Origin: Oopsacas minuta
Taxonomy: Eukaryota; Animalia; Porifera
NCBI GenBank assembly: GCA_024704765.1
Contig: JAKMXF010000022.1
Location: 759,055 to 823,054, forward strand
Direction of reading: 5' to 3'
Length of the DNA stretch: 64,000 bases
The notes beneath the pieces are model-generated. The model was not told where the DNA came from and did no database searches. It was given only the letters and a program-made list of their open reading frames with translations. Shown here piece by piece: positions 5,484 through 61,836 of this stretch; position 1 is the stretch's first letter, and each line of letters starts with the position of its first letter. The translations under genes were made by a program, and so were the position numbers.

Positions 5484-6635
<1,152 letters not shown>

Positions 6636-7366
6636 GCTTCCAGCTACTGGCGTGTTTGAGTTGTATTACTTGGTAATTTATGTATATTTGTTAGCTTTTA
6701 GGTGATTATGTCAATTAAAACTACGAATACACAAACTCTTTTTAAACTTTAATGACCCTTACTTACAGGATAACTAAATTGGTGATTATATTCACACTTT
6801 TGGCCCAAGTCCATACATATTAGTATGACAGTAGACACGTAATATTAAAACGAATACGTTATTGTACAAATTTCTTGCAAATTATTCTCTCCATAGACCA
6901 TAGCGAACATATCGGATATAGCAGGAGAATTGCCCCACAATTATTTCTCAAATTGTATAAGTAACAAATATAATGTATTGAGAGTATCCTAATCAAACTA
7001 TTGGAAGCATGATTTTCCCGCGAAAACAAAAATTGCCAATATAAAACGAAGAATACCTATACAATGATGGTAGAATTTAGCACTCTTGTTAAGTCCCGAA
7101 GTGAAGTGATCAAGCCCATTGCATGATTAACGTGACCTCTTCCACCGACCCAGTGACTAGTGTACCATAATTCATTCAACATTACATGTTTGTAATTTTA
7201 TTTAATTTCTTATTTTAACAGAACACAAGAATATATATACAAGCTAGGAATAGTGAATAATATGTGAAAATACAATGAGAGATAATTAGTTAAAATATAG
7301 AAAAATATAATTGAATACATGTAATATTCTTCCTGGGTAAATACAGCTGAATGAGGGTTGCAAATG

Positions 7367-46996: not shown

Positions 46997-49900
46997 ATGG
47001 ACCTTACGAAAAGTAGACCGAAATTAGACGATTTTCTGAAGACTTTAAATCAATATATTTCCTCACTTCCTGCTACCAAACCTAAACATATTCTAGAACT
47101 CTATTCAAAGAATAACAAATCAATCCCTCCCTTCCCGCAAGATGTATGTCCTTCTATGAGTGGGGACTGGGATATATTCCACTACTCTGCCCCCTCCTCT
47201 ATAAAGCTGATTGGTAGCTACATCCTACAATTACAAGTGAAACCTAAATCCAATATAGACTTAGCTATAGAACTACCTCTAGAATGTTATACACGTAGAG
47301 ATTATCTTGACTACCGATGGGCCCTAAAGAATGCTCTTTACCTCTCACACTTGGCTACACAAATCACAAAATGGGACTCCATTCTTAGTGTCCATTTCTT
47401 CTATCTTAACAATAATACCTTAAAACCTGCTATAGTATTACGTGCTAAGAACCATCCTAAGATAGATATACGATTACTACCACACCCGCCTAACGAATTA
47501 TTCAAACTTACAAAACTACTTCCTTATGAGAACTGTGTGAGACATAACCTAGACTCATTATCCTCTCCCAATCCTACACCTCTATACAATAACTCCCTCT
47601 TATCCACATTATTCTATGAGCAACATCTGCATTCAATATTCACTGCTATGGAGTTGTGTCCTGCTATCAGAGATGCTGTATTACTCGTTAAAGAATGGCT
47701 ACGGAGGAGAAATCTAGAAGATGGGTGGGGTGGATTCTCTGGGTTTCTCGGAACAATGCTCTTGACGTATCTACTGAGTTGTAGGAATGTGAGTAATGGT
47801 ATGAGTGAGTTTCAAATATTCAGAGTATTCATTCTAACTTTAGCCTCTTCAAACTGGACAGAGGAACCTATCTCTTTATTCCCAGAGGGACAGGAACCCC
47901 CTATAGACCCTGGCTCATTCACACCTTTCTATCCGGTAACGTTTGTCGACACCTCTGGCTATGTGAACCTAGCAGGTGATCTCTCTCTAGCACAATACTC
48001 ACGTGTAAGGCACGAGGCACAGATCTCTCTATCACAACTAGACTCATCTCGAGCCTTTGATCTTCTGTTCCATACATGTGTACCTTTCTTGGACTCATTT
48101 GATTGTGTGATTAGGATAGAAGAACTACATTCCATTCTCTCTCACATTAAAGATACTGTTACTACGGGGGAAGTACCAGAGATTGGTTCTCAGCTGTTAC
48201 CAACTGTCATTTACAGAATGTTAAAAATCCTGGAGAAAGGGTTAGGTGATAAAGTACGAATAATCTCACACACAGCTCTCTATTATGACCCGTGGGGCAT
48301 AGACACACACCCTCCTGTAGTTCCCCATCCTGATCAGCTGTCTCTAGGCTTTATCTATACCGGAAGTGAGATGTTTTCAGGTCAGATAATAGGTCCTCCT
48401 CTAAGTGACCCTGTGAGTGTAGTGTTCAGTGAATTATGGGGTGATAAGGTAGAGATGAGGAGGTTTCCTGATGGAGCAGTATGTCCTGTTGTAGTATGGC
48501 CTTGTTCCAATCCTTCTGAGTCACGTATTATTCCTTTTCTAATCACTAGACATCTGTTAGCCACACACATGGGAGTGTGTCCAGATAAGGTAACATTCCC
48601 GGGGATGCAGTTGGATCAGTTGTTGCATATTTCAGACCAATCCTCTATAGGACCAGAAATACCTCTATCAACTGGAGAGACATCTAGTAGCAGAGTACAA
48701 GATCTGTTTGGTGAGCTAACACAGAAATTATTTGCTCTCAAACATCTCCCTCTCCGTATCAGCTCTGTACAAGGTACGCATGCTGTATTCAGAGGGTGTC
48801 ACGTGTTCCCTCCTTCCTTAGCTCCCTCTGGAAGAGCTCTTCTAGCTCTGAAATCAGAAGGAGATGACCCTTCCTTCCTCTTGCCCAATGCAGACCTCTC
48901 TACTCCCCGTTACACCCCTGCTCTTACAGCTGTCCTCAATCTAGCTATCTCTGGGAAGTGGCCAGATGAGTTAGAAGCTATTTGGCGCGTAAAAACAGCA
49001 TTTTATTTAGAACTTTATCACCAGCTGAAGAAACAATTAATCTTGTCACTTCCAACTCGTTTCTTTTTGGACGTGTTTTTCCATGGATTTGTGTTTCGTT
49101 TTCAAGTATCCTACTTTAGAGAAGTTCAGTACCTACAAAACTATCCGGGACCCCTTGACCTAACTGTACAATTGAATGCTCGTGCTTCAGAACTGTTATT
49201 TGAGACAAAAACACTACCAACATATACTGCTAGAGTACACGGATTAATTCTGAAATATTCTTCTCTCAGTGCTGCTATTAGGCTTACGAAGAGATGGATA
49301 CATTCTCAAATGTTTTCTACTCTAATTCCTGACGTCATTATTGAAATGCTAGTTTTGTATGTGTATCTCAACTCAGAGCTATTCACCAGTCCAGGACATC
49401 ATGTTACCGCTTTTCTGCGGTTTTTGTCACTGTTGAGCTTGCACAGCTGGGAAACGGAACCGATTATAATTAATCCATCGAATCAGATCTCTGAGGAGGA
49501 CATTAAAGAGATACGAATTCAATTTCCTAAACTAAGACATACCCTCCCTCCTCTCTTCCTCGTCTCACCATGGGACAAAGAATCTAAGATAACAGCTTCT
49601 ACTCCATCTCTCCCAGTGCTTAACAGATTGACTATCTTAGCGAGGCAAACATACAAATACTTATCCTCCTTTCTTATACCTCAAATAGGATCCACACCTC
49701 TGGTAGATATCAAGGCTCTATTCAGACCCCCATTGAATGACTTTGACGTCATTATTCGTATAAGACTCAAGTTTGCACCGAGAGCTCTCTACGCAGTGGA
49801 CCCGTTAGTAGTTCCTCCTGTCCAAGAGAGTAAACAGAGAAAAGTCATGAATATGCCTGTTGTAGAATTTGACCCAGTTGAGAAGTTTGTTAAAGAGCTG

Positions 49901-50137
49901 AGGAGTAGATTTGAAAAAATAGCTCTCTTCTTTGTAGATGAGTGGGGTGGGAGAGAAGTTGGGGTTGTTTGGCAACCTAGTTACCAGCTGACAGACAGAT
50001 TCCGTGTCAATCAGTGTGGAGGTAAGAGATACAAGCAAGATAGTCAATTAATGGATGTAAATTTACATTCTGTTTTGAATGATTTTCGAATGATTGGAGG
50101 AGATATGATAGAGGATATTATATCAAATTCAAAATAG
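46997..50137 (+). CDS. NOL6: Nucleolar protein 6 (Nrap/Utp22), intronless
   Basis: IGSY...IDLAIELP, YLDYRW..K.ALYL, WLRRR.L...GGF.GF, FWG.K.E.RRF.DG, W.HSQ, DPV..FV.ELR. Confidence 0.96.
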   Translation: MDLTKSRPKLDDFLKTLNQYISSLPATKPKHILELYSKNNKSIPPFPQDVCPSMSGDWDIFHYSAPSSIKLIGSYILQLQVKPKSNIDLAIELPLECYTRRDYLDYRWALKNALYLSHLATQITKWDSILSVHFFYLNNNTLKPAIVLRAKNHPKIDIRLLPHPPNELFKLTKLLPYENCVRHNLDSLSSPNPTPLYNNSLLSTLFYEQHLHSIFTAMELCPAIRDAVLLVKEWLRRRNLEDGWGGFSGFLGTMLLTYLLSCRNVSNGMSEFQIFRVFILTLASSNWTEEPISLFPEGQEPPIDPGSFTPFYPVTFVDTSGYVNLAGDLSLAQYSRVRHEAQISLSQLDSSRAFDLLFHTCVPFLDSFDCVIRIEELHSILSHIKDTVTTGEVPEIGSQLLPTVIYRMLKILEKGLGDKVRIISHTALYYDPWGIDTHPPVVPHPDQLSLGFIYTGSEMFSGQIIGPPLSDPVSVVFSELWGDKVEMRRFPDGAVCPVVVWPCSNPSESRIIPFLITRHLLATHMGVCPDKVTFPGMQLDQLLHISDQSSIGPEIPLSTGETSSSRVQDLFGELTQKLFALKHLPLRISSVQGTHAVFRGCHVFPPSLAPSGRALLALKSEGDDPSFLLPNADLSTPRYTPALTAVLNLAISGKWPDELEAIWRVKTAFYLELYHQLKKQLILSLPTRFFLDVFFHGFVFRFQVSYFREVQYLQNYPGPLDLTVQLNARASELLFETKTLPTYTARVHGLILKYSSLSAAIRLTKRWIHSQMFSTLIPDVIIEMLVLYVYLNSELFTSPGHHVTAFLRFLSLLSLHSWETEPIIINPSNQISEEDIKEIRIQFPKLRHTLPPLFLVSPWDKESKITASTPSLPVLNRLTILARQTYKYLSSFLIPQIGSTPLVDIKALFRPPLNDFDVIIRIRLKFAPRALYAVDPLVVPPVQESKQRKVMNMPVVEFDPVEKFVKELRSRFEKIALFFVDEWGGREVGVVWQPSYQLTDRFRVNQCGGKRYKQDSQLMDVNLHSVLNDFRMIGGDMIEDIISNSK

Positions 50138-50550
50138 AAGTGTTTAAATAGATGTGGTAAGGAATATTCATTTGATATAAGTTATAGAATCCTGATTGGA
50201 AGAGAATACTACTGAGGATGAGATTTAAGATTTATCCAAGAGAAGAGGCAACAAAGACCACTTCAATTTGATAAATCAATATAGAATTAGAGACCTTTTT
50301 AGCAATTCATAGTTTATTTATTTCTTGTTTTCGAATGACACGAGGACTCTTCAACTGCTAGAAAACCTTGAAATATTTATATAAAGTTATTGATTAATCT
50401 GATATACGTAGATAGCTATAGAAATCTCTTATTTCGTACTATATGTGTATGCTGTTAATCTTTGTTTTAAGGATTGAACCTCGGATAAGTGAAAATGTTC
50501 GGAAACTCAAAAATGATGTGAAATCAGTGATGGTGAATATTATACAGTGT

Positions 50551-50735
50551 CAGCGGTGTAGCCAGCCTCGAGAGAAATTTTATTTGCAGATTCAACACAA
50601 AGCATATCGTATAGGCCTGCAATAATACTAAATAACTCGTGAACTACGTAAATTACGTAGTTCACGAGATTCACGAATAGATATGATCCATTGAAAAATA
50701 TTTCCCGAGCAGGCCCAGGCCTGGCTTCGCCACTG
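50551..50735. mobile_element. hAT-like MITE with an internal 33-bp palindrome
   Basis: TIRs cagcggtgtagccag / ctggcttcgccactg. 8-bp flanks tacagtgt / tacaatgt match 7/8. Palindrome at 50636-50668. Confidence 0.75.
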
Positions 50736-51216
50736 TACAATGTAGATTTTATATATTCAATTGGATGTTTTCTTGTGTATCAATACGGGATTGCCGATAT
50801 TTGTATCGTTCGAAATACTATAGTTTGCCAGTAATAATGAATATTTTTCACAACTAATTGTCCTCTATAATTTTAACCAATTGTCTACTCTACTGTAACA
50901 AGCGTATTGTGTACGTATGTTAATTATTTAATGATTCTATGCTTTCGTATTTCGTATTTCGTATTTCGCTACGAAAAGCTTTGCGACAATTCTGCAAACA
51001 ATTAATGGATTCTAAAATTACAATTATTAAATTTATTAATATTCAATTATTATTTTATTAACTTCATAATAAATAAATAATTGTAAACATCAATAGAGAA
51101 GTATTAGAAAACAAAATTATTTTTTCAATTCACAGTCTAACAACAACAAATTAGCAAATAATTCCTATAACCATCACGAAATTGCGTTTACTCTTTGCAA
51201 CGTGGAAAGTTGACTT

Positions 51217-51738
51217 TCAAGTCACGAGTATAAATTTGATGCAACTATAACCAATTTTCACTGGCATGGTCAGGATCGCTAAAGTGATCATAAAGAAGAA
51301 AAACAACCAGGAAACGAATCCACTTAGTATCTGGATTTGTCTGGTTTGAGAAACTTCGATTGGTTGGAAAGGATTGGGTTTACCTATTAGGAAGCGTCTG
51401 TCTGAACCGCTACTCCCAAAATTATCGACCTGACAGTCTGGCTTGCTGTTTTTCCTCGCTATGATTGTCTTAGCCAGCTCCCTGTGCTGAATGCAACTAC
51501 TATCACTTTGCAGGGTCTCCAAGAATGGCTCGAAGTCCCTTCTCTCTTTTTCAAGATGCTTCACCAGCTCGATGTTCTGTTTCTTGGTGCTGTAAATGTT
51601 CCCTATCTTCTCTCTCTCATCCTCCTTCATTACACCCGCATTTACAAGTCCATGGCTAATCTTTGTGAAATCTAACTTATTTACTATGAACAGTTCATAA
51701 GTACGGAAATTCTTGTATGATTCTGTATTACAACCCAT
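51217..51738 (-). CDS. Small death-fold (CARD-like) protein with a hydrophobic C-terminal tail (173 aa unspliced)
   Basis: Residues ~8-95 follow the CARD helical pattern (IVNKLDF..I...LVNAGVM...E.EKI.....T..QN.EL...L....DFEPFLETL....H.ELA). C-terminal ILSGFVSWLFFFFMITLAILTMPV. The ATG is directly preceded by an in-frame TAA. Confidence 0.7.
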   Translation of the reverse strand: MGCNTESYKNFRTYELFIVNKLDFTKISHGLVNAGVMKEDEREKIGNIYSTKKQNIELVKHLEKERRDFEPFLETLQSDSSCIQHRELAKTIIARKNSKPDCQVDNFGSSGSDRRFLIGKPNPFQPIEVSQTRQIQILSGFVSWLFFFFMITLAILTMPVKIGYSCIKFILVT

Positions 51739-52394
51739 TTATAGTTTGTGGAAATTTTGGAATTAGTATATATGATTTTTTATGATTTTTCTTTTCCAAA
51801 TTGTCTACAATAAGGTATATTTATAGTTTTTGCAGTATATTAATGTTATGTGACATATAATATACTTCACTCAAACAATTAGTCATCTCGGGGCTAGCAT
51901 AATAGTTTGGGATTGAATATAGTAAATTTCTTCAAATATTTATTGCCATGATGAATTATATTCTAAAAACATATTTTCTTGAAGTTTACACGTTATTCCT
52001 AGCAATCTTTGTTGTGTTACATATATTGATGCGAAATATTTTGTATTTGCAAAGGTTGACATGTCAGAGCGCGGCGCTAACAGTCAAGATAGTCAGGCTA
52101 TGGCTTGACCACTTTATAATAGATCAAGCCAACTCAAGAGCCTGACCGCTACTTAATACCTTCCGTCGCCCTTGCATGAGTTACATCTTAAAATACTCGA
52201 TTAAATAGTTTAACAACAGAATGATAACGCAATCACTTAGACATAAGTCTCCAGGTGTACACAGCATTTTGTAAATAAGACAAAAGTCACATACAGTATC
52301 TTCTACTTTTAAATTTTAGCATGAAAACTGCAATGTTGTTTACAGCTAACAGAAACTTTCAAATTTTGTTTGCCTGGATAATTTTAGGTATTTA

Positions 52395-55300
52395 ACAGAC
52401 TATTCGTATGAAGTACTTCTTACCATATATACAGCAACTAACTTGTGTTAACAACGTAAACTCAATTGGAGGAATTGTAAATGAGATTTTGAGGGAGGAA
52501 AGATTGTTGTTAACAGCAATTTTGATGCTCTTAACAGTTAACAGCATTTCTACCATCCCTGAAAAGAATAATTCTCTTACAGTCTCTTCGTTTATACCAG
52601 CAATTTTGATATGTCTAATGTTTCAATACTAGAAATTACATATGTATTCTAACTCAGAAGCATGCTAGGTTAAAAATTTCCATCAACAATAATGTTATTG
52701 TCTGACTATCTACTACTGGCTCGATGCTTCTTAATTCTATAGTTAACATTCCTTATTGGAATACGATCTATCATTTTCTGAAATTTTTATTTGAGACATA
52801 ATTGTATCTGGGTGGAAATTGTGGATATTAACTAGAAATACATTTGGTTTCCGATTTCTATAAAGACAGGGTTATTAATATTATAACCTTTTTCAGCCGC
52901 AGATGGTTTCAACCAGCATAATGTTTGAAGAATACTGGAGATAATTAATAATTACACAATGCTTACTTCATAGTAATTGCGATACTATTTATTGATTAAT
53001 AATAATTTACTCCAAACCAGTCCTGGAGTTGTCTTCGATCCCAACAAAATTGGGGTCACAACTGATCCCATTCGTCAAGTATACACTTCCATGAACTACT
53101 TTGTTAAGTATATTAATATTAATTACGTATATGTTCACTGCTAACCTCACTCTGTAAATTTCGTACTCAATTACTCCTTTTCGATGTTTTCAATTTTTCT
53201 AGAGATTATGGAGGGAGGAGGGTTGATGTAATACTCTAAATTAGCTGTGTGTGAGCTACGTTAGAGTTTGCTCAGTTATATATTCGAAAAATATAATATA
53301 TTAATTAACATTTTGGTTTAATTAATCAATTAAAGTTTATGCATTAACACTTTGATTTAATGTTTGTGCTAATTCGGTGACATTTGATAATTAGCCGTTA
53401 AATATATAATTATTACTCAACCTTGATGATGTAATTTAGCAGCTACAGTAGAACTCTCTGATTGGGATTTACTTGCTACTTACTAGCCTTTTATTTTTGG
53501 GGAAAATTTTTAAGTGACAAGTATATATTCCCTGGACGCCTTACCACATGCTTTTTAGGTAAAATAGCTTAGTTATTTCTTAGTAAATTTGAACAATGTG
53601 TTACTGACTTACTGTTTGTGTCTTGTCTACTGAAGTTTTGGCACCTGTGTATATTGGATAGAAATATATCGAAAATATCATATCATGATATCCAAAAACA
53701 ATGGATCCTGTTTATTATCATCCTTAATAGAATAACCCGTTTACTACCATAAGGTTCCAAAACCATTTTCGGTACTTCTTGTATTAACAAACTCCGCTGT
53801 TGCCATATCGCGTTATGTCATCTCCCGGATATTGTCATAAAATGTGGTCAAATTTGGTATCCTCCAGGATCTGTCATATACTTGAACGTGAATTCCAGTT
53901 TATTAGAAAGAAAAACGGGGAAATATACTGTACATAAGGAAGTGTGATAAAATCGTTTGCATATAGTTATGTCTACATGTATTGTCATTTAGCACTGAAC
54001 ACGTACATACATGCTACGTTTAAGAATTGTATTCCCAGATTATCCCGGATAATGTCATAGCAATCAACACTATCCATATATTGAAAATTAAATCAATTCT
54101 AGAACTTGGAATTTTAATTTTTTTGTAAATAATGATTCGTATTATTATATAAATCGTAGGATATATTGAGATTCCATTGTGATTCGAATTTTGTGTAATA
54201 CACATAATACATATCCAACCGAATTTTCTATTGATCAATTATACGAAAGTACAATATAATGAGCCTCTATACACGTAATATCCCTAATATTCATACGTTG
54301 TACCTACATGATTGAGAATACCAACTCGTGGTCTTGTGCTAGTTATCTACTAATTTTTGTATTGTCTATGCTTGTAATTACATACCTGGCTGGTATCAGC
54401 GTCTATACTGCTATAATTTCACTTAGCTCATGACACGTTTTATCCACTAATCTCTTCAACATTGTTTTCGATGATTTTCAATTAACTTAATTGCCAGATG
54501 TTATGTTTTCCAACAATAACATCTAATTTCGTCTGTCTTGTCTTTGCCAATTTTGCTTCACCAGTATTTGAGGTCATATAATTGTGAATTCATTAATCTG
54601 CGTAGGAAATTTATTAATGGCGAATTATCTTTGGCAATTCATTGTTATTGAGATATACACAATTAAATAAATTACTTAACGAGAAATCTGAATATTCAAT
54701 GTGTTTATAACCTCGAGGAATCATCAAATATTTCAATTTTTCTGTTACTACATTTACTAGATACAGTCAACTTCCGCTATTTCGAATGTTAACAGGAATA
54801 TTCGTTATCTCGGCATTCAAGATAGCGGATGAAAAAACCGTTCGCTATCTTGAATGCCGGTTACCTCGAACAGATTTTCCGGGTTCGAGTTACCAGATGT
54901 TAACTGTATAGCATATTCATTGAATATAATTTTATATTCTTGATATGAATTTTTTTATTGCATTTTGAAAAGATCACAAAAAACTGAATAAGCAGTAAAT
55001 ATCATATGAAAAAGTGTCACTGGGGAAATTGGAACCTTAAAATGGAGTCCATCTGTTAACTCGAACATTCGCTATCTCAAATAGATTTTGATTCCCTTGA
55101 GGGTTCGAGTTACCGGTTGTTGACTGTAATTAAATCTAATGAAAATGAGATAATTAATTCCCTTGCACTTATTGAAGTCATTTTATTTATTTAGTAAATG
55201 ATTTGTAGTATATTAATTATCTTTCTGCTAACAGTTAGTTTTAATCATAGAATATTCAATTTCGAACTTCTTCAAAATAGGACTCATTTCAAGTAGCTTT

Positions 55301-57216: not shown

Positions 57217-58323
57217 ATGGCTAATGCTAATATCGTTCGTGGAATTCTCTTCGAAGTAGGACCTAGGTATTGCGATTTAAATTTCATCGGTGAGGGTGCT
57301 TATGGAATGGTGGTATCTTCATTAGATACAAGGACAGGACATAAGTGCGCTATAAAGAAAATTACACCATTTGAGCATCAAACGTATTGTCAACGTACAC
57401 TACGTGAAATAAAAATCCTGACTCGCTTCAATCACGAGAATATCATCAGTATTCAGGACATCATAAAGCCTAAAGGGCTCGATGAATTTCAAGACGTGTA
57501 TATTGTACAAACTCTAATGGAGACAGACATGTACAAGCTGCTCAAGAACCAGAACCTGACTAACGAGCATATATGCTACTTTTTATACCAGATCCTACGA
57601 GGACTCAAATATATCCATTCTTCTAATGTTATCCACAGAGATCTTAAGCCTAGCAATCTACTGCTCAACTCAACTTGTGATCTGAAAATATGTGACTTTG
57701 GATTGGCTCGTGTTATGGACCCTGGGCATCACCACAATGGAATGCTCACCGAATATGTAGCCACCAGATGGTATCGCGCGCCTGAAATTATGCTCAGTCC
57801 TAAGGCTTACAACACTAGTATTGATATGTGGTCTGTAGGCTGTATCTTAGGAGAGATGCTCTCCAATCGACCCCTTTTCCCAGGCAAGCACTACCTGGAC
57901 CAACTTAACCTAATTCTGGGTGTAGTAGGTTCCCCAACTGCTGAGGACCTGAACTGTATTCTCAATGAGAAGGCTAGAGTATATCTACAGAGTCTCCCTC
58001 AACGTCCAAAGGTCCCTTGGTCTAAACTGTACCCCAAAGCTAATCTCCTAGCTCTCGACCTCCTAGACAGACTCCTCACATTCAATCCACACAGACGTGT
58101 CTACGTAGAAGACTCCCTAAAGCATGTATACCTCAAACAGTTCTATGAGCCACGAGACGAGCCTATTGTAGAGCATCCATTCACGTTTGAGGTTGAGCTA
58201 GACGATCTCCCAAAGGAAACCCTCAAACAGATGATCCATGATGAGGTCATGCAATTCCCTCCCGCAAAACTCCCGAATAAAATCGTAGTTCCGGGCACGA
58301 CCGGAGCCGAGAAAATGGTTTAG
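57217..58323 (+). CDS. MAPK1: ERK-type mitogen-activated protein kinase, intronless
   Basis: [45 protein letters not shown] activation loop, TRWYRAPE. Confidence 0.98.
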
Positions 58324-58816
58324 ATGTCAGCGAGACAGCTCCTACGCATACTGCCTCTCGTAGCTTCTTTAATAACTAACTAACTCTAACACTTTTGTAT
58401 ATTTTGATTACGCCCTCTATTTTCTATCTGTCTCGTCGCGTATTCTGTGTGTCGGTGTGTTTGTGTGGTGTAGGTGAATATATTGTTAGCGTAAACACTA
58501 GGTCTTCATCACATGTACTCTCTCAATTGATTTACGTTTTTATAATAAGTCTAATCTGAGGTAAGAGATAGAATTTGGTGAATATTTCAACGTTCCTGCA
58601 TCTTCATACTAACTATTTCGTATTATTGTGTTATGACTATGATATACTTTAATTTCTATCGAATTTATTTCAGCTAATAGGATAATATATTGTGTTAACC
58701 CTTGTTGTATAGCTCAGGGTTGGGTATGCTTTCTCCATAAGGGCTACTTTACTGCGACGCTCTTTTCTGCTATCCGCCTTATGTGCCCTTATAAGTTAAC
58801 TGCGAGATTTATTATA

Positions 58817-58984
58817 CAGTCAACTTCCGTTATATCGAAGCTCAGATGGAATATATTTACAGTGAAACCTCGTTAATACGAGCACCAACGGACAGTCAAA
58901 ATTTGTTCGTCTTATCCGGAAATTCGTATTAACGAGGTTCCACTGCATGTAAAATTTCCGACTTCGATATTACTGGGTTGGTTG
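58817..58984. mobile_element. Tc1/mariner-like MITE containing a nested 86-bp MITE (58860-58945)
   Basis: Outer left end ta-cagtcaacttccg, as at 54764. Inner TIRs cagtgaaacctcgttaatacga / tcgtattaacgaggttccactg match 21/22. Confidence 0.75.
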
Positions 58985-59415
58985 TATGTACGTATTATAA
59001 ATGAAGTCCCTATGAATATTCTATTCTAATATATTTCTCACTATTATAGAAGGCCACACTGGCCCCCTTTTTGCCACGATGGTATAGTAATTAGTGTGAC
59101 TAACATATCAAGGAAGAGATCCAAGTTAAGCAATCGAAATGAGCCCAATTTCACACCATGAAAATCTGACGTCACTCAAACACCCAATTGTCGGTATCCT
59201 TACTTGTACTACCTGGTTGCAACATACCATACATACGTGTTATCTCAGCCAATCCAAATAGAAAGATACTCATAATTAAACAATTACATAATTAATAATT
59301 AGTAATTAGTAATTGTCACTGTATTGTCTTTGTTATTTAATTAATTACTAACACATTAGTGAATTTCTGGAGAATAATATTAAGTAACAATAGAATAGTA
59401 GCACAGATAGTGTGT

Positions 59416-61836
59416 ATGGCTTCCCTGGATGAATTGGAGCGTAGAGGACAGCTCCTGAGTTGTGAGGAACATAAAAAGAATGACTCACTCCCACTAATCA
59501 CCCTTAAAGTATTATACTACTGTGAGCAATGTGAAACTCATCAGTGTCCAGATTGTAACCGTGAGATCCATTCTAAACTGAAGGGACACAACTTCACAGA
59601 AGTACAGCTTCATCTTGAGGACGCCATCCAAAGTAAAGTGGATCCACTGGGTTGTGAGTTATGGTGCGATGGTAAGAACCTCGCTGAGATATGGTGTGAA
59701 GGATGTAATGGTATTCGTATGTGTACATTATGTGACGCAAGACTTCATAACTCTAACACAAACAACAGAGAATCACACGCCAGGAGGTCTCTATACGATA
59801 CCGATATATCTATCCGTGACGTCAGCGCTGCCTTCCTGCTGATGGATGAAGATGAGATAATACAGGTAGAAACAGCAGCTGATTTCAGGAAGTTATTAGG
59901 TACAGATGTTACGGAGTACACTACACTTAAGGTGGTGTCTATATTCGGTAATACAGGTGATGGAAAGTCTCACACACTCAACCATGCTTTCTTCAACGGA
60001 CAGGAAGTATTCAATGTATCAGCTAAACAGGTCTCTTGTACTATTGGAGTTTGGGCAAAGTTCCACCCTAAACTAAATGCGCTTTTTATCGACACAGAAG
60101 GACTGCTTGGCGAATCTGATAACGCGAATAGACGTACGAGATTGTTGTTGAAGATTCTCGCGGTTTCTGACATAGTTGTGTATCGATCCAGAGCAGAGCG
60201 TCTCCATACAGATATGTTTAACTTCCTTGGAGATGCAGCTAAAGCTTACACGGAATATTTTACTCAGGAACTGTCAAAAGCCGCAGAACGTTGTAACCTC
60301 AAAATTTCTCTCTCAAATCTGGGACCTGCTCTTCTTATATTCCACGAGACACAGCATACAGATCCTCTTGGCTCTTCTACCCCCTCTCCCCCTGATAACA
60401 AGAATGAATCTAAGATAGACAAGGATCGAGCTGATAAAGCTCTATCTAACATTAGTCCTGAGGAGCTAATAAGACGTAAATTTCATTCACTCAAATATTC
60501 TCCTAATGCGTTTAGCTCCACTAACTATGTAGGAATACGTACTAAATTTCCTCCCACAAATTTCACTTCATTTGTACGTAAAATCAAAGATATTCTATCT
60601 AACCATACGGTGAGGGCTCCTAGAGCTCCAGAGGTGTTCTTACAAGCTTTAACAGTTTTAAACAAGAAGTTCTCTGGAGATATTGATCCCTCCCTTCCCT
60701 CCTCTTTTCCTGACCAATACTTTACTTGTAACACACGGTGTCTCGCATGTGGAGCTCGTTGTGAGAAAGGGACTAATCACCATCTAGAAAAGATACCTCA
60801 CCTCACACGACAGAGATGTAAGTATACACATCAATTCGATAACAAAGTATTCACGTGTATCATATGCTTTGAAAACGGCAATGAGTGTATTGTAATTCCT
60901 CAAACTGCGGCTTCTAACACATCAGCATGGTCTGGTCTAGCTCAGTACATGTGGGCTGGCTACGTACTTGAATGTAAGAAATGTGGAGTTATATACAAAA
61001 GCAGACAGTATTGGTACGGCAATAGAGAGCCCACTGAGAAGGCTGCTCGCACAGAGATACGTCACGTATGGGAGGGAGATGTAGGTATCGGGGGTAATAC
61101 ATCTCATAACATAGGTCGTAGACTTATGGATGGAGTCAGTAATATATCACAACAAGTATCTACCTCATCTTCTACTGCTACCATGACGTCATGGTTAACT
61201 GATCAGATGGCGCCTTCTTACTGGGTCGCTAACAAAGAGACAGATACTTGTCACGATTGTGATAAGCACTTCTTACCTGGAGAAACTAAGCATCACTGCA
61301 GGGCTTGTGGGAATATATTCTGTGAGGATTGTTCTGATCAGCTGATGCCTGTACCTGAATTAGGATGGGGAACTATCCCAGTTAGAGTTTGTAGAAAATG
61401 TTATACAACTCGAGAAACTGCACAAACAAAACCTGAAATAAATATAAATGATTCTGATGATGATGATTTCGCTCTGATAGAACATCCCCCTGTAGAGGTT
61501 CCGAATATTCCTAATTCCCCGGGGAATCCAAACACCGTTACAGCTCGTAAAGTAGGAGAAGGACTCCAAACTGTATTCAGCTTCGTGTCCTCAGCAGCTG
61601 GTATTCCTAAATCATTCATCACAGACATGGCTCGTCCCTCTTACTGGGTACCAGATGCTGACATTAATGAATGCTATCTGTGTAGAGAATATTTCACAGC
61701 TGATAAATATAAACACCACTGTAGAGCATGTGGTCAGGGATTCTGCGGAAAATGCTCTTCACACCAGAAATCAGTACCCAATAGAGGATGGGAGTATCCT
61801 GTCAGAGTATGTGATAGTTGTGCTGACAAGTTATGA
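59416..61836 (+). CDS. ZFYVE1: Zinc finger FYVE domain-containing protein 1 (DFCP1), intronless
   Basis: Two N-terminal B-box-like Cys/His clusters, P-loop domain (SIFGNTGDGKSHTLN, DTEG), Cys-rich domain and two FYVE fingers (KHHCRACG twice). Confidence 0.96.
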   Translation: MASLDELERRGQLLSCEEHKKNDSLPLITLKVLYYCEQCETHQCPDCNREIHSKLKGHNFTEVQLHLEDAIQSKVDPLGCELWCDGKNLAEIWCEGCNGIRMCTLCDARLHNSNTNNRESHARRSLYDTDISIRDVSAAFLLMDEDEIIQVETAADFRKLLGTDVTEYTTLKVVSIFGNTGDGKSHTLNHAFFNGQEVFNVSAKQVSCTIGVWAKFHPKLNALFIDTEGLLGESDNANRRTRLLLKILAVSDIVVYRSRAERLHTDMFNFLGDAAKAYTEYFTQELSKAAERCNLKISLSNLGPALLIFHETQHTDPLGSSTPSPPDNKNESKIDKDRADKALSNISPEELIRRKFHSLKYSPNAFSSTNYVGIRTKFPPTNFTSFVRKIKDILSNHTVRAPRAPEVFLQALTVLNKKFSGDIDPSLPSSFPDQYFTCNTRCLACGARCEKGTNHHLEKIPHLTRQRCKYTHQFDNKVFTCIICFENGNECIVIPQTAASNTSAWSGLAQYMWAGYVLECKKCGVIYKSRQYWYGNREPTEKAARTEIRHVWEGDVGIGGNTSHNIGRRLMDGVSNISQQVSTSSSTATMTSWLTDQMAPSYWVANKETDTCHDCDKHFLPGETKHHCRACGNIFCEDCSDQLMPVPELGWGTIPVRVCRKCYTTRETAQTKPEININDSDDDDFALIEHPPVEVPNIPNSPGNPNTVTARKVGEGLQTVFSFVSSAAGIPKSFITDMARPSYWVPDADINECYLCREYFTADKYKHHCRACGQGFCGKCSSHQKSVPNRGWEYPVRVCDSCADKL

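Follow-up and report, generated by a model that had tools for sequence, protein, structure and literature searches.

A putative CARD protein with a C-terminal membrane anchor in the sponge Oopsacas minuta: the shortened member of a small family analogous in layout to MAVS and CARD19

Gene, CARD fold and membrane anchor

The gene described here lies on the minus strand of a 64,000-nucleotide stretch of the genome of the glass sponge Oopsacas minuta (GenBank assembly GCA_024704765.1, contig JAKMXF010000022.1, positions 759,055 to 823,054). This whole stretch is referred to as the window, and positions are those of the window unless otherwise stated. On the basis of sequence and structure modelling, the gene is predicted to encode a genuine CARD on a C-terminal membrane anchor. 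A previous reading of the nucleotide letters, called here the sequence-only reading, had proposed a CARD, a linker, a hydrophobic segment and a basic residue in this place, and all of them were confirmed at 51217-51738 on the minus strand. The gene and the parts of its product are the following:

51217..51738, minus strand: tail-anchored CARD gene, a complete single-exon coding sequence of 173 aa plus a TGA stop at 51217-51219 (list of open reading frames)
51445..51729, minus strand: CARD, residues ~4-98, a six-helix death fold with kinked helix 1 (AlphaFold2 (AF2), Foldseek, VIA, hhalign, Pfam CARD)
51331..51444, minus strand: short linker, residues 99-136 (family alignment A2, motif scan)
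51259..51330, minus strand: transmembrane segment, residues 137-160, ILSGFVSWLFFFFMITLAILTMPV, ending at P159 (hydropathy, AF2 single-sequence model, invariance of P159)
51220..51258, minus strand: C-terminal tail of 13 residues, KIGYSCIKFILVT, net charge +2 (family alignment A2, charge count)

A TAA codon is found in frame directly 5′ of the ATG, which fixes the N terminus of the protein, provided that no exon is spliced into the open reading frame. Over its first 100 residues the protein is hydrophilic and helical. When the full protein was modelled with AF2 from its single sequence, this N-domain reached a predicted local distance difference test (pLDDT) value of about 50, yet six helices were already visible. 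The single-sequence model of the N-domain was replaced by one built on a ten-sequence family alignment (A3), with a pLDDT of 88 and a predicted template-modelling score (pTM) of 0.76. In the latter model, helices span residues 4-13/15-21, 24-33, 39-46, 51-64, 69-77 and 83-98, and the first of them is kinked at residue 14, resulting in the break into H1a and H1b that is typical of CARDs. The six-helix, CARD-like pattern first noticed in the sequence is thus real in the family-alignment model.

Comparison with known structures identified this domain as a death fold, which was the outcome awaited by the sequence-only reading when it proposed the CARDs of MAVS, RIG-I and caspases as references. 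Among the 50 matches listed by Foldseek against the PDB, nearly all were CARDs (best TM values of 0.65-0.80), with the few Death-domain matches ranking below them by score and death effector domains (DED) likewise lower. The Foldseek candidates were re-aligned with VIA in order to re-rank them, and in the resulting list the top 48 PDB entries were CARDs without exception, with Z values up to 12.8. The best match was the CARD of caspase-9 (Z 12.8, root-mean-square deviation (rmsd) of 2.1 Å, 91/95 residues). High values were also obtained for MDA5 CARD2 (12.3), RIG-I CARD1 (11.5) and the Apaf-1 CARD (11.4), and lower ones for BinCARD (9.9-10.0, rank ~35, rmsd 2.3-2.6 Å), ICEBERG (9.7) and the MAVS CARD (9.2, rank 48). 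Helical bundles may attain such Z values by chance, an explanation that is disfavoured here by the uniformity of the list and by the full-length coverage of the alignments.

The search of PDB sequences by phmmer with the single window protein resulted in chance matches only, such as shikimate kinase. The Pfam CARD model (PF00619) matched the full window protein with an E-value of 0.004 and 17.5 bits, and the domain alone with 19.3 bits. The same model matched 9 of 10 family N-domains (best E 3.2e-5), and the two matches listed with their ranges, those of the window protein and of one of its paralogues (the C332 copy), share the same register. Homology to bona fide CARDs was found at the profile level: the alignment by hhalign of A3 with the four canonical CARDs of O. 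minuta (A4) gave a probability of 83% and an E-value of 8.5e-6 over 76 columns. Searching PDB sequences with the family profile gave weak matches, mostly to the CARDs of MDA5 (CARD2), BCL10, CARD11 and RAIDD and to designs based on the Apaf-1 CARD, and the look-alikes found in the ESM Atlas were CARD clusters, with scores at the level of leads only. The sequence comparisons and models indicate that residues ~4-98 are a CARD, diverged past the threshold of Pfam.

Regarding the membrane anchor, hydropathy analysis located the expected stretch of about 24 hydrophobic residues at positions 137-160, with the basic residue K161 directly after it. The best 19-mer of this segment has a Kyte-Doolittle value of 2.27, as against 0.67 for the next-best one in the protein; it is the sole strongly hydrophobic part of the sequence, the N terminus being hydrophilic and part of the CARD. 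The AF2 single-sequence model shows a helix at residues 131-172 with pLDDT values of 73-96. In alignment A2, P159 at the end of the segment is invariant in the family, and K168 in the tail is nearly so. Each of the 15 family members contains one transmembrane segment of 19-24 residues (Kyte-Doolittle values of 1.8-2.8); beyond it lie another 9-20 residues, with a net charge between +1 and +5. All 15 have the traits of tail-anchored proteins, that is, no signal peptide and a single transmembrane segment at ~30 residues or less from the C terminus. From these traits, the protein would be inserted post-translationally, with the CARD exposed to the cytosol. A cluster of basic residues is present just before the transmembrane segment in all family members except the window protein.

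Intronic read-through as the source of the hydrophobic tail, a risk that the sequence-only reading had pointed out, was rejected: start and end positions of both O. minuta paralogues and of all 12 relatives match those of the window protein, and the C-terminal segment is shared by all of them. Less favourable was the result for the MGC start of the protein, which is indeed present and had been regarded as a possible acylation site. The PROSITE myristoylation pattern is G-{EDRKHPFYW}-x(2)-[STAGCN]-{P}. In the window protein the fifth residue from the glycine is E, which breaks this pattern, and Gly2 is found in none of the relatives, whose sequences start with MSD, MNQ, MP, MD or MA; an acylation site is therefore not credible.

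Family, genomic context and transcription

A word-indexed homologue search returned the window protein itself as the sole match, and it was through phmmer and profile searches that relatives were revealed. The phmmer search against 1.84 billion representatives gave seven relatives of 223-274 aa, and the profile search gave three more. Relatives were catalogued as P0002-P0014; all of them come from ENA or Logan assemblies, mostly from contigs of 0.16-2 Mb. A profile search of the O. minuta assembly (61.46 Mb, 365 contigs) revealed exactly three copies, namely the window gene and two paralogues, the C177 copy (218 aa) and the C332 copy (276 aa). The family consists of about 15 proteins, and in phmmer and profile searches of billions of proteins it was not detected outside a few close relatives.

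Two clades were resolved in the maximum-likelihood tree with support of 100/100. Clade A contains the window gene, the C177 copy and P0002-P0005, and clade B the C332 copy and P0006-P0008. Common to the family are the CARD, with invariant core residues, an acidic serine-rich linker of variable length, and the transmembrane segment with its short tail. The source genomes of the relatives (ERZ25766962, ERZ25069837, ERZ20067936 and SRR11455650) are presumably hexactinellid, judging from microsynteny and from the 70% identity of the neighbouring Nrap gene product, and the family would consequently be restricted to hexactinellids. For the O. minuta and P0002 species, the identity of the CARD protein is ~52%, as compared with this 70% for Nrap, which indicates that the family evolves fast.

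The genomic context of the gene provides synteny anchors on both of its sides:

46997..50137, plus strand: Nrap (NOL6-like) gene, convergent with the CARD gene (Pfam Nrap domains 1-6)
57217..61836, plus strand: protein kinase gene (57217-58323) and FYVE-domain gene (59359-61836), the anchors on the other side (Pfam)

The block formed by the FYVE gene, the kinase gene, the CARD gene and Nrap was also found around P0002 (ERZ25766962) and P0003 (ERZ25069837). In ERZ20067936 (locus L011), P0004 adjoins a FYVE gene, with no kinase called on that side. Its other neighbours are P0005, a duplicate in inverted orientation, and a fragment of the CARD. This CARD-only fragment (L011:12699-12918), located between the two full copies, shows 76-82% identity to P0004/P0005 over 33 residues and is probably a pseudogene left by local duplication.

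Because of the shared syntenic block, the window gene is the positional orthologue of proteins of 223-233 aa, in contrast with the 173 aa of its own product. According to alignment A2, the difference lies in the linker, which is ~46-60 residues shorter in the window protein than in every relative. No assembly error accounts for this deletion, since the number of indels across the coding sequence was 0 in all four sequencing runs examined. The proportion of synonymous differences (pS) was 0.56 between the window gene and the C177 copy and 0.74, a saturated value, between the window gene and P0002, the lower value suggesting a duplication within the O. minuta lineage. The sequences further suggest that, after the duplication, the syntenic copy in the window became shortened and the dispersed one remained long, so that the former would be a shortened in-paralogue. 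The ratio of nonsynonymous to synonymous substitution rates (dN/dS) for the window gene and the C177 copy was 0.32 overall and 0.20 in the CARD, values that, with the caveat of a near-saturated dS, indicate purifying selection on both copies.

Between the two clades, a single element of the linker can be aligned, the motif [DE]S[GS]Φ[FY][ST], present as DSSAFT, DSSSFT, DSSTFT or DSSIFT in clade A and as ESGIYS or ESGIFS in clade B. It was found in 13 of 15 members, being deleted in the window protein and degenerate in P0005. Between this motif and DSGΦxS, the phospho-motif of IκB and β-catenin, there is a likeness that we take as a lead only. By its sequence, the motif of the long forms is likely to be a regulated docking or turnover site. 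The linker of clade B contains a second conserved block in alignment A2, consisting of [FL]ITxLFKELSFxPK, then D[TN]ESGIYSEG[DE]L and an acidic run, SE(S/A)ISEE (for instance at L003:1498-2328, residues ~120-175); this block is absent from clade A, the window protein included.

Transcription of the gene was approached through four runs of one sample, none of which is recorded as RNA, compared over 49000-54000. Runs X1-X3 showed a flat depth (about 100, 253 and 92, respectively) and were identical to the reference, as DNA would be. Run X4, on the contrary, differed from the reference over these 5 kb by 11 single-base differences and 2 indels, and for this reason it likely derives from another individual or pool. 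Judged by its depth profile, X4 is probably from RNA: depth was very uneven, with ~580 over Nrap and ~35-45 in the spacers, fell to 0 at 51004-51170 and rose to ~6300-6800 at 51171-51671, with a value of 3295 at 51672-51838. Contig ends of this run enter adaptor sequences at 51174 and 51766, and no joints were found. Together, the depth block and the adaptor-tagged contig ends delimit one further feature:

51174..51766, minus strand: probable transcript of about 593 nt, unspliced (X4)

On the minus strand, 13 nt ahead of the point where the block ends, AGTAAA at 51187-51192 constitutes a variant poly(A) hexamer. The sequence TATATA at 51767-51773 was considered as a promoter TATA box and set aside, since it is too near the apparent 5′ end. 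The depth of contigs reflects expression poorly, and the run is of unrecorded type; within these limits, the data are suggestive of an abundant, unspliced transcript of ~0.6 kb located exactly over the open reading frame of the window gene.

Candidate partners and relation to known CARD proteins

Only four canonical CARDs were found in the O. minuta genome. Possible partners of the window CARD are a CARD-caspase, a BCL10 homologue of 149 aa (L005:1360-1809; G000:C33) whose CARD matches that of human BCL10 with an E-value of 5e-11, a 1195-aa protein (L010:884-4471; G000:C210) whose CARD is closest to those of CARD11 and CARD9, and a CARD-only protein of 96 aa. The CARD-caspase is encoded by a single open reading frame in the genome, of 374 aa, with a GTG start and no ATG before its CARD. 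This frame lies 8 nt downstream of, and in another frame than, an open reading frame of 1376 aa with NACHT, LRR-like and Roc-type GTPase P-loop regions (L017:499-5762; G000:C299:317498-322761). A GTAAAG...CCTTCAG pair identified by eye at L017:4568-4638 delimits 71 nt whose removal would join both frames, with a single NACHT-LRR-Roc-CARD-caspase protein as the possible product.

The genome-wide search for NB-ARC, the Apaf-1-type domain, gave no match, and hence no recognisable Apaf-1 was found. For the Bcl-2 family there was one weak match genome-wide (27.7 bits, C222:1314997-1315236). The compact genome of O. minuta seems to contain a reduced version of the classical machinery for mitochondrial apoptosis.

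An alternative role to be weighed in this context is that of a membrane platform, or restraint, for a CARD-bearing initiator caspase, with the window protein standing in for the apoptosome adaptor in a genome that seems to have no Apaf-1. The CARDs of caspase-9 and Apaf-1 (PF00619) are the nearest folds, with helix 1 kinked likewise, and the single CARD-caspase frame and the unmatched NB-ARC would fit such a role. Nevertheless, identity to these CARDs is only 16-18%, the window protein contains neither protease nor NB-ARC and is membrane-anchored instead, and the partner of a CARD is not predictable from structural rank among CARDs. In addition, the caspase frame seems to be fused or closely coupled to a NACHT-LRR-Roc protein of its own, a possible activator, and the two genes are not co-localised in the genome. 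The prediction of a complex between the window CARD and the caspase CARD gave a score of 0.00 with controls not run, which speaks neither for nor against binding. We consider this role unlikely. Prodomain-less caspases are neighbours of the gene, and the caution of the sequence-only reading that nothing ties them to it still stands.

A known protein of very similar size and layout is CARD19 (BinCARD). Apart from MAVS and CARD19, both characterised in mammals, no CARD protein is known to be integral to a mitochondrial membrane (PMC8997538). Like the window protein, CARD19 is small and consists of a CARD, oriented to the cytosol, and one transmembrane helix near the C terminus (PMC8997538). A sponge counterpart of CARD19 would be located in the mitochondrial outer membrane and have a structural role, related to MICOS/MIB and the shape of cristae, rather than a role in signalling. 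The presence of a BCL10 homologue in the genome and the alignment of the BinCARD CARD at Z 9.9-10.0 favour this proposal. On the other hand, the transmembrane helix of CARD19 is more central, and its distal C terminus, an intermembrane-space tail, is needed for mitochondrial targeting (PMC8997538), in contrast with the 13 residues (9-20 in the family) that follow the segment of the window protein. Furthermore, BinCARD is a mid-ranking structural match and is missing from the PDB matches of the family profile at E<=10, and the phmmer and profile searches gave no sequence link. Being a counterpart of CARD19 is thus improbable for this family; CARD19 is a closer analogue than MAVS in size, and the family is orthologous to neither of them.

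The sequence-only reading had assigned to the protein a MAVS-like adaptor topology. The part of this proposal that holds is the layout, in which a disordered linker connects the CARD at the N terminus to a C-terminal tail anchor that would place the CARD on the cytosolic face of an organelle; this layout is real, conserved in the family and probably expressed. The part that does not hold is the rest, since nothing specific to MAVS was found beyond topology. Human MAVS has ~540 aa, as compared with 173 aa in the window protein, and the CARDs of RIG-I, MDA5 and MAVS are of the CARD_2 type (PF16739). The Pfam scan of the window protein at E<=10 listed PF00619 alone and CARD_2 was not matched; the MAVS CARD was missing from the PDB matches of the family profile and was a poor structural match, as stated above. 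The linker of MAVS is Pro-rich and contains TRAF2/3/5 and TRAF6 binding motifs and a pLxIS motif for IRF docking. No Pro-rich region is present in the window protein. Scans with regular expressions for TRAF2, TRAF6 and pLxIS motifs gave no match in the window protein, nor was any such motif conserved among the family members, and the TRAF-binding motifs that could have supported the earlier proposal were therefore not recovered. Similarly, in a scan for LC3-interacting region (LIR) motifs the window linker gave no match, the only match of the window protein (residue 23) lying inside the folded CARD, and none was conserved in the family.

As for the upstream receptors, the RIG-I-like receptors (RLRs) whose presence the sequence-only reading had left to be looked for, a six-frame search of the genome gave no match to RIG-I_C-RD or CARD_2, both models being used with no eukaryotic positive control. 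The same method in the same genome finds 8 NACHT, 4 Death, at least 150 zf-TRAF, 4 Rel-homology and 2 IRF matches. In the demosponge Amphimedon, two RLRs have been described, with N-terminal Death domains instead of CARDs (PMC8998645).

A highly diverged MAVS orthologue would act as a mitochondrial adaptor that takes CARD signals from RLRs and activates TRAF, IRF and NF-kB. This proposal is favoured by the identical layout, the good structural matches to the CARDs of RIG-I and MDA5 (Z 11.5-12.3), the many TRAFs and the two IRF-domain and four Rel-homology-domain matches of the genome, and by the documentation of a mollusc MAVS, as cited in PMC8998645. Against it stand the low rank of the MAVS CARD, the missing CARD_2, motifs and Pro-rich region, the RIG-I_C-RD domain not found by a search that detects the other domains, the Death domains of demosponge RLRs, and the failure to detect the family beyond a few close relatives. 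We conclude that the window protein is not a MAVS orthologue and is analogous to it in layout, orthology being very improbable. The wording "minimal organelle-anchored death-fold adaptor", also contained in the sequence-only reading, remains fair as a description of membrane topology.

Finally, that the open reading frame is spurious or decaying, either open by chance or left over from the long form as a pseudogene, is largely refuted: the window copy is the shortest family member, has lost the conserved linker motif and has the longest branch of its subclade (0.73 vs 0.34-0.68), but its frame is intact and its termini conserved, its CARD is constrained and retains the invariant core residues, its fold is confidently predicted, its locus is syntenic, and the X4 block is very deep, sharply bounded and placed exactly over the gene.

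Proposed role of the short and long forms

The reading that we favour, with a probability of about 0.65, is that the family is a lineage-specific, membrane-tethered CARD adaptor or regulator, of which the window copy is a minimal form, and that it is analogous, not orthologous, to MAVS and CARD19. As generally observed for CARDs, the domain would establish homotypic CARD-CARD contacts, with another CARD or with itself, at the surface of the membrane, and tethering to the surface of an organelle would concentrate, or restrain, the assembly of a CARD partner there. The window copy, which occupies the ancestral locus, has lost the basic cluster next to the membrane and the linker segment with the motif, but its CARD and anchor remain under purifying selection. 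The resulting minimal CARD-on-membrane form would most likely act as a seed, a cap or a competitor of the long C177 paralogue. In this respect the window copy resembles the CARD-only regulators (ICEBERG and COP-type proteins), which likewise consist of a CARD with no effector-docking linker and follow a logic of decoy or capping, and by analogy a decoy role may be envisaged for it; these regulators are soluble, whereas the window protein is predicted to be tethered to the membrane.

Several observations weigh against this reading. The Pfam CARD scores of the window protein (17.5-19.3 bits) are under the gathering score of 23.9. The cues for the destination membrane conflict with each other, since the high hydrophobicity of the transmembrane segment leans to the endoplasmic reticulum and the basic flanks of the relatives lean to the mitochondrial outer membrane, and the upstream basic cluster is absent from the window copy. 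Expression was deduced from one run, X4, through contigs only. The conserved linker motif is embedded in low-complexity Ser/Asp sequence, and its likeness to a phosphodegron could be fortuitous. The role as regulator of the long paralogue is deduced purely from the deletion.

A third family with the layout of MAVS and CARD19, present in a glass sponge and unrelated to them in sequence, suggests that a membrane-anchored, polymerising death fold is a recurrent solution; alternatively, the arrangement may be far older than the vertebrate antiviral pathway. As three genes, with both long and short forms, occur together in its genome, O. minuta would offer a compact natural system for the contribution of the anchor to CARD signalling. 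The setting is a genome with IRF and Rel-homology domains, a TRAF expansion and BCL10-like and CARD9/11-like CARDs, in which NB-ARC and RLRs were not detected in the searches described above.

A bolder extension, which we regard as doubtful, is that glass sponges evolved, or alone retain, tail-anchored CARD adaptors that constitute a signalling platform on an organelle, an independent analogue of MAVS near the base of the animals. In this scheme, the NACHT/Roc-linked CARD-caspase or the BCL10/CARD-coiled-coil (CARD-CC) proteins would signal through the platform to TRAFs, the linker motif would be a phospho-switch, and the short form would act as a CARD-only brake. Type 1 paracaspases have been dated to before the cnidarian-bilaterian ancestor, and Porifera are listed with type 2 only (PMC5978004). 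Judging from the CARDs of the 149-aa and 1195-aa proteins, parts of the CARD-CC/BCL10 system may exist in a sponge.

The TRAF repertoire of O. minuta is a very large expansion. The zf-TRAF model (PF02176) gave at least 150 scored matches among 349 candidates in the 61-Mb genome, many of them in tandem arrays, such as those at C343:75000-150000, C110:594000-642000, C353:102000-114000 and C19:35000-45000.

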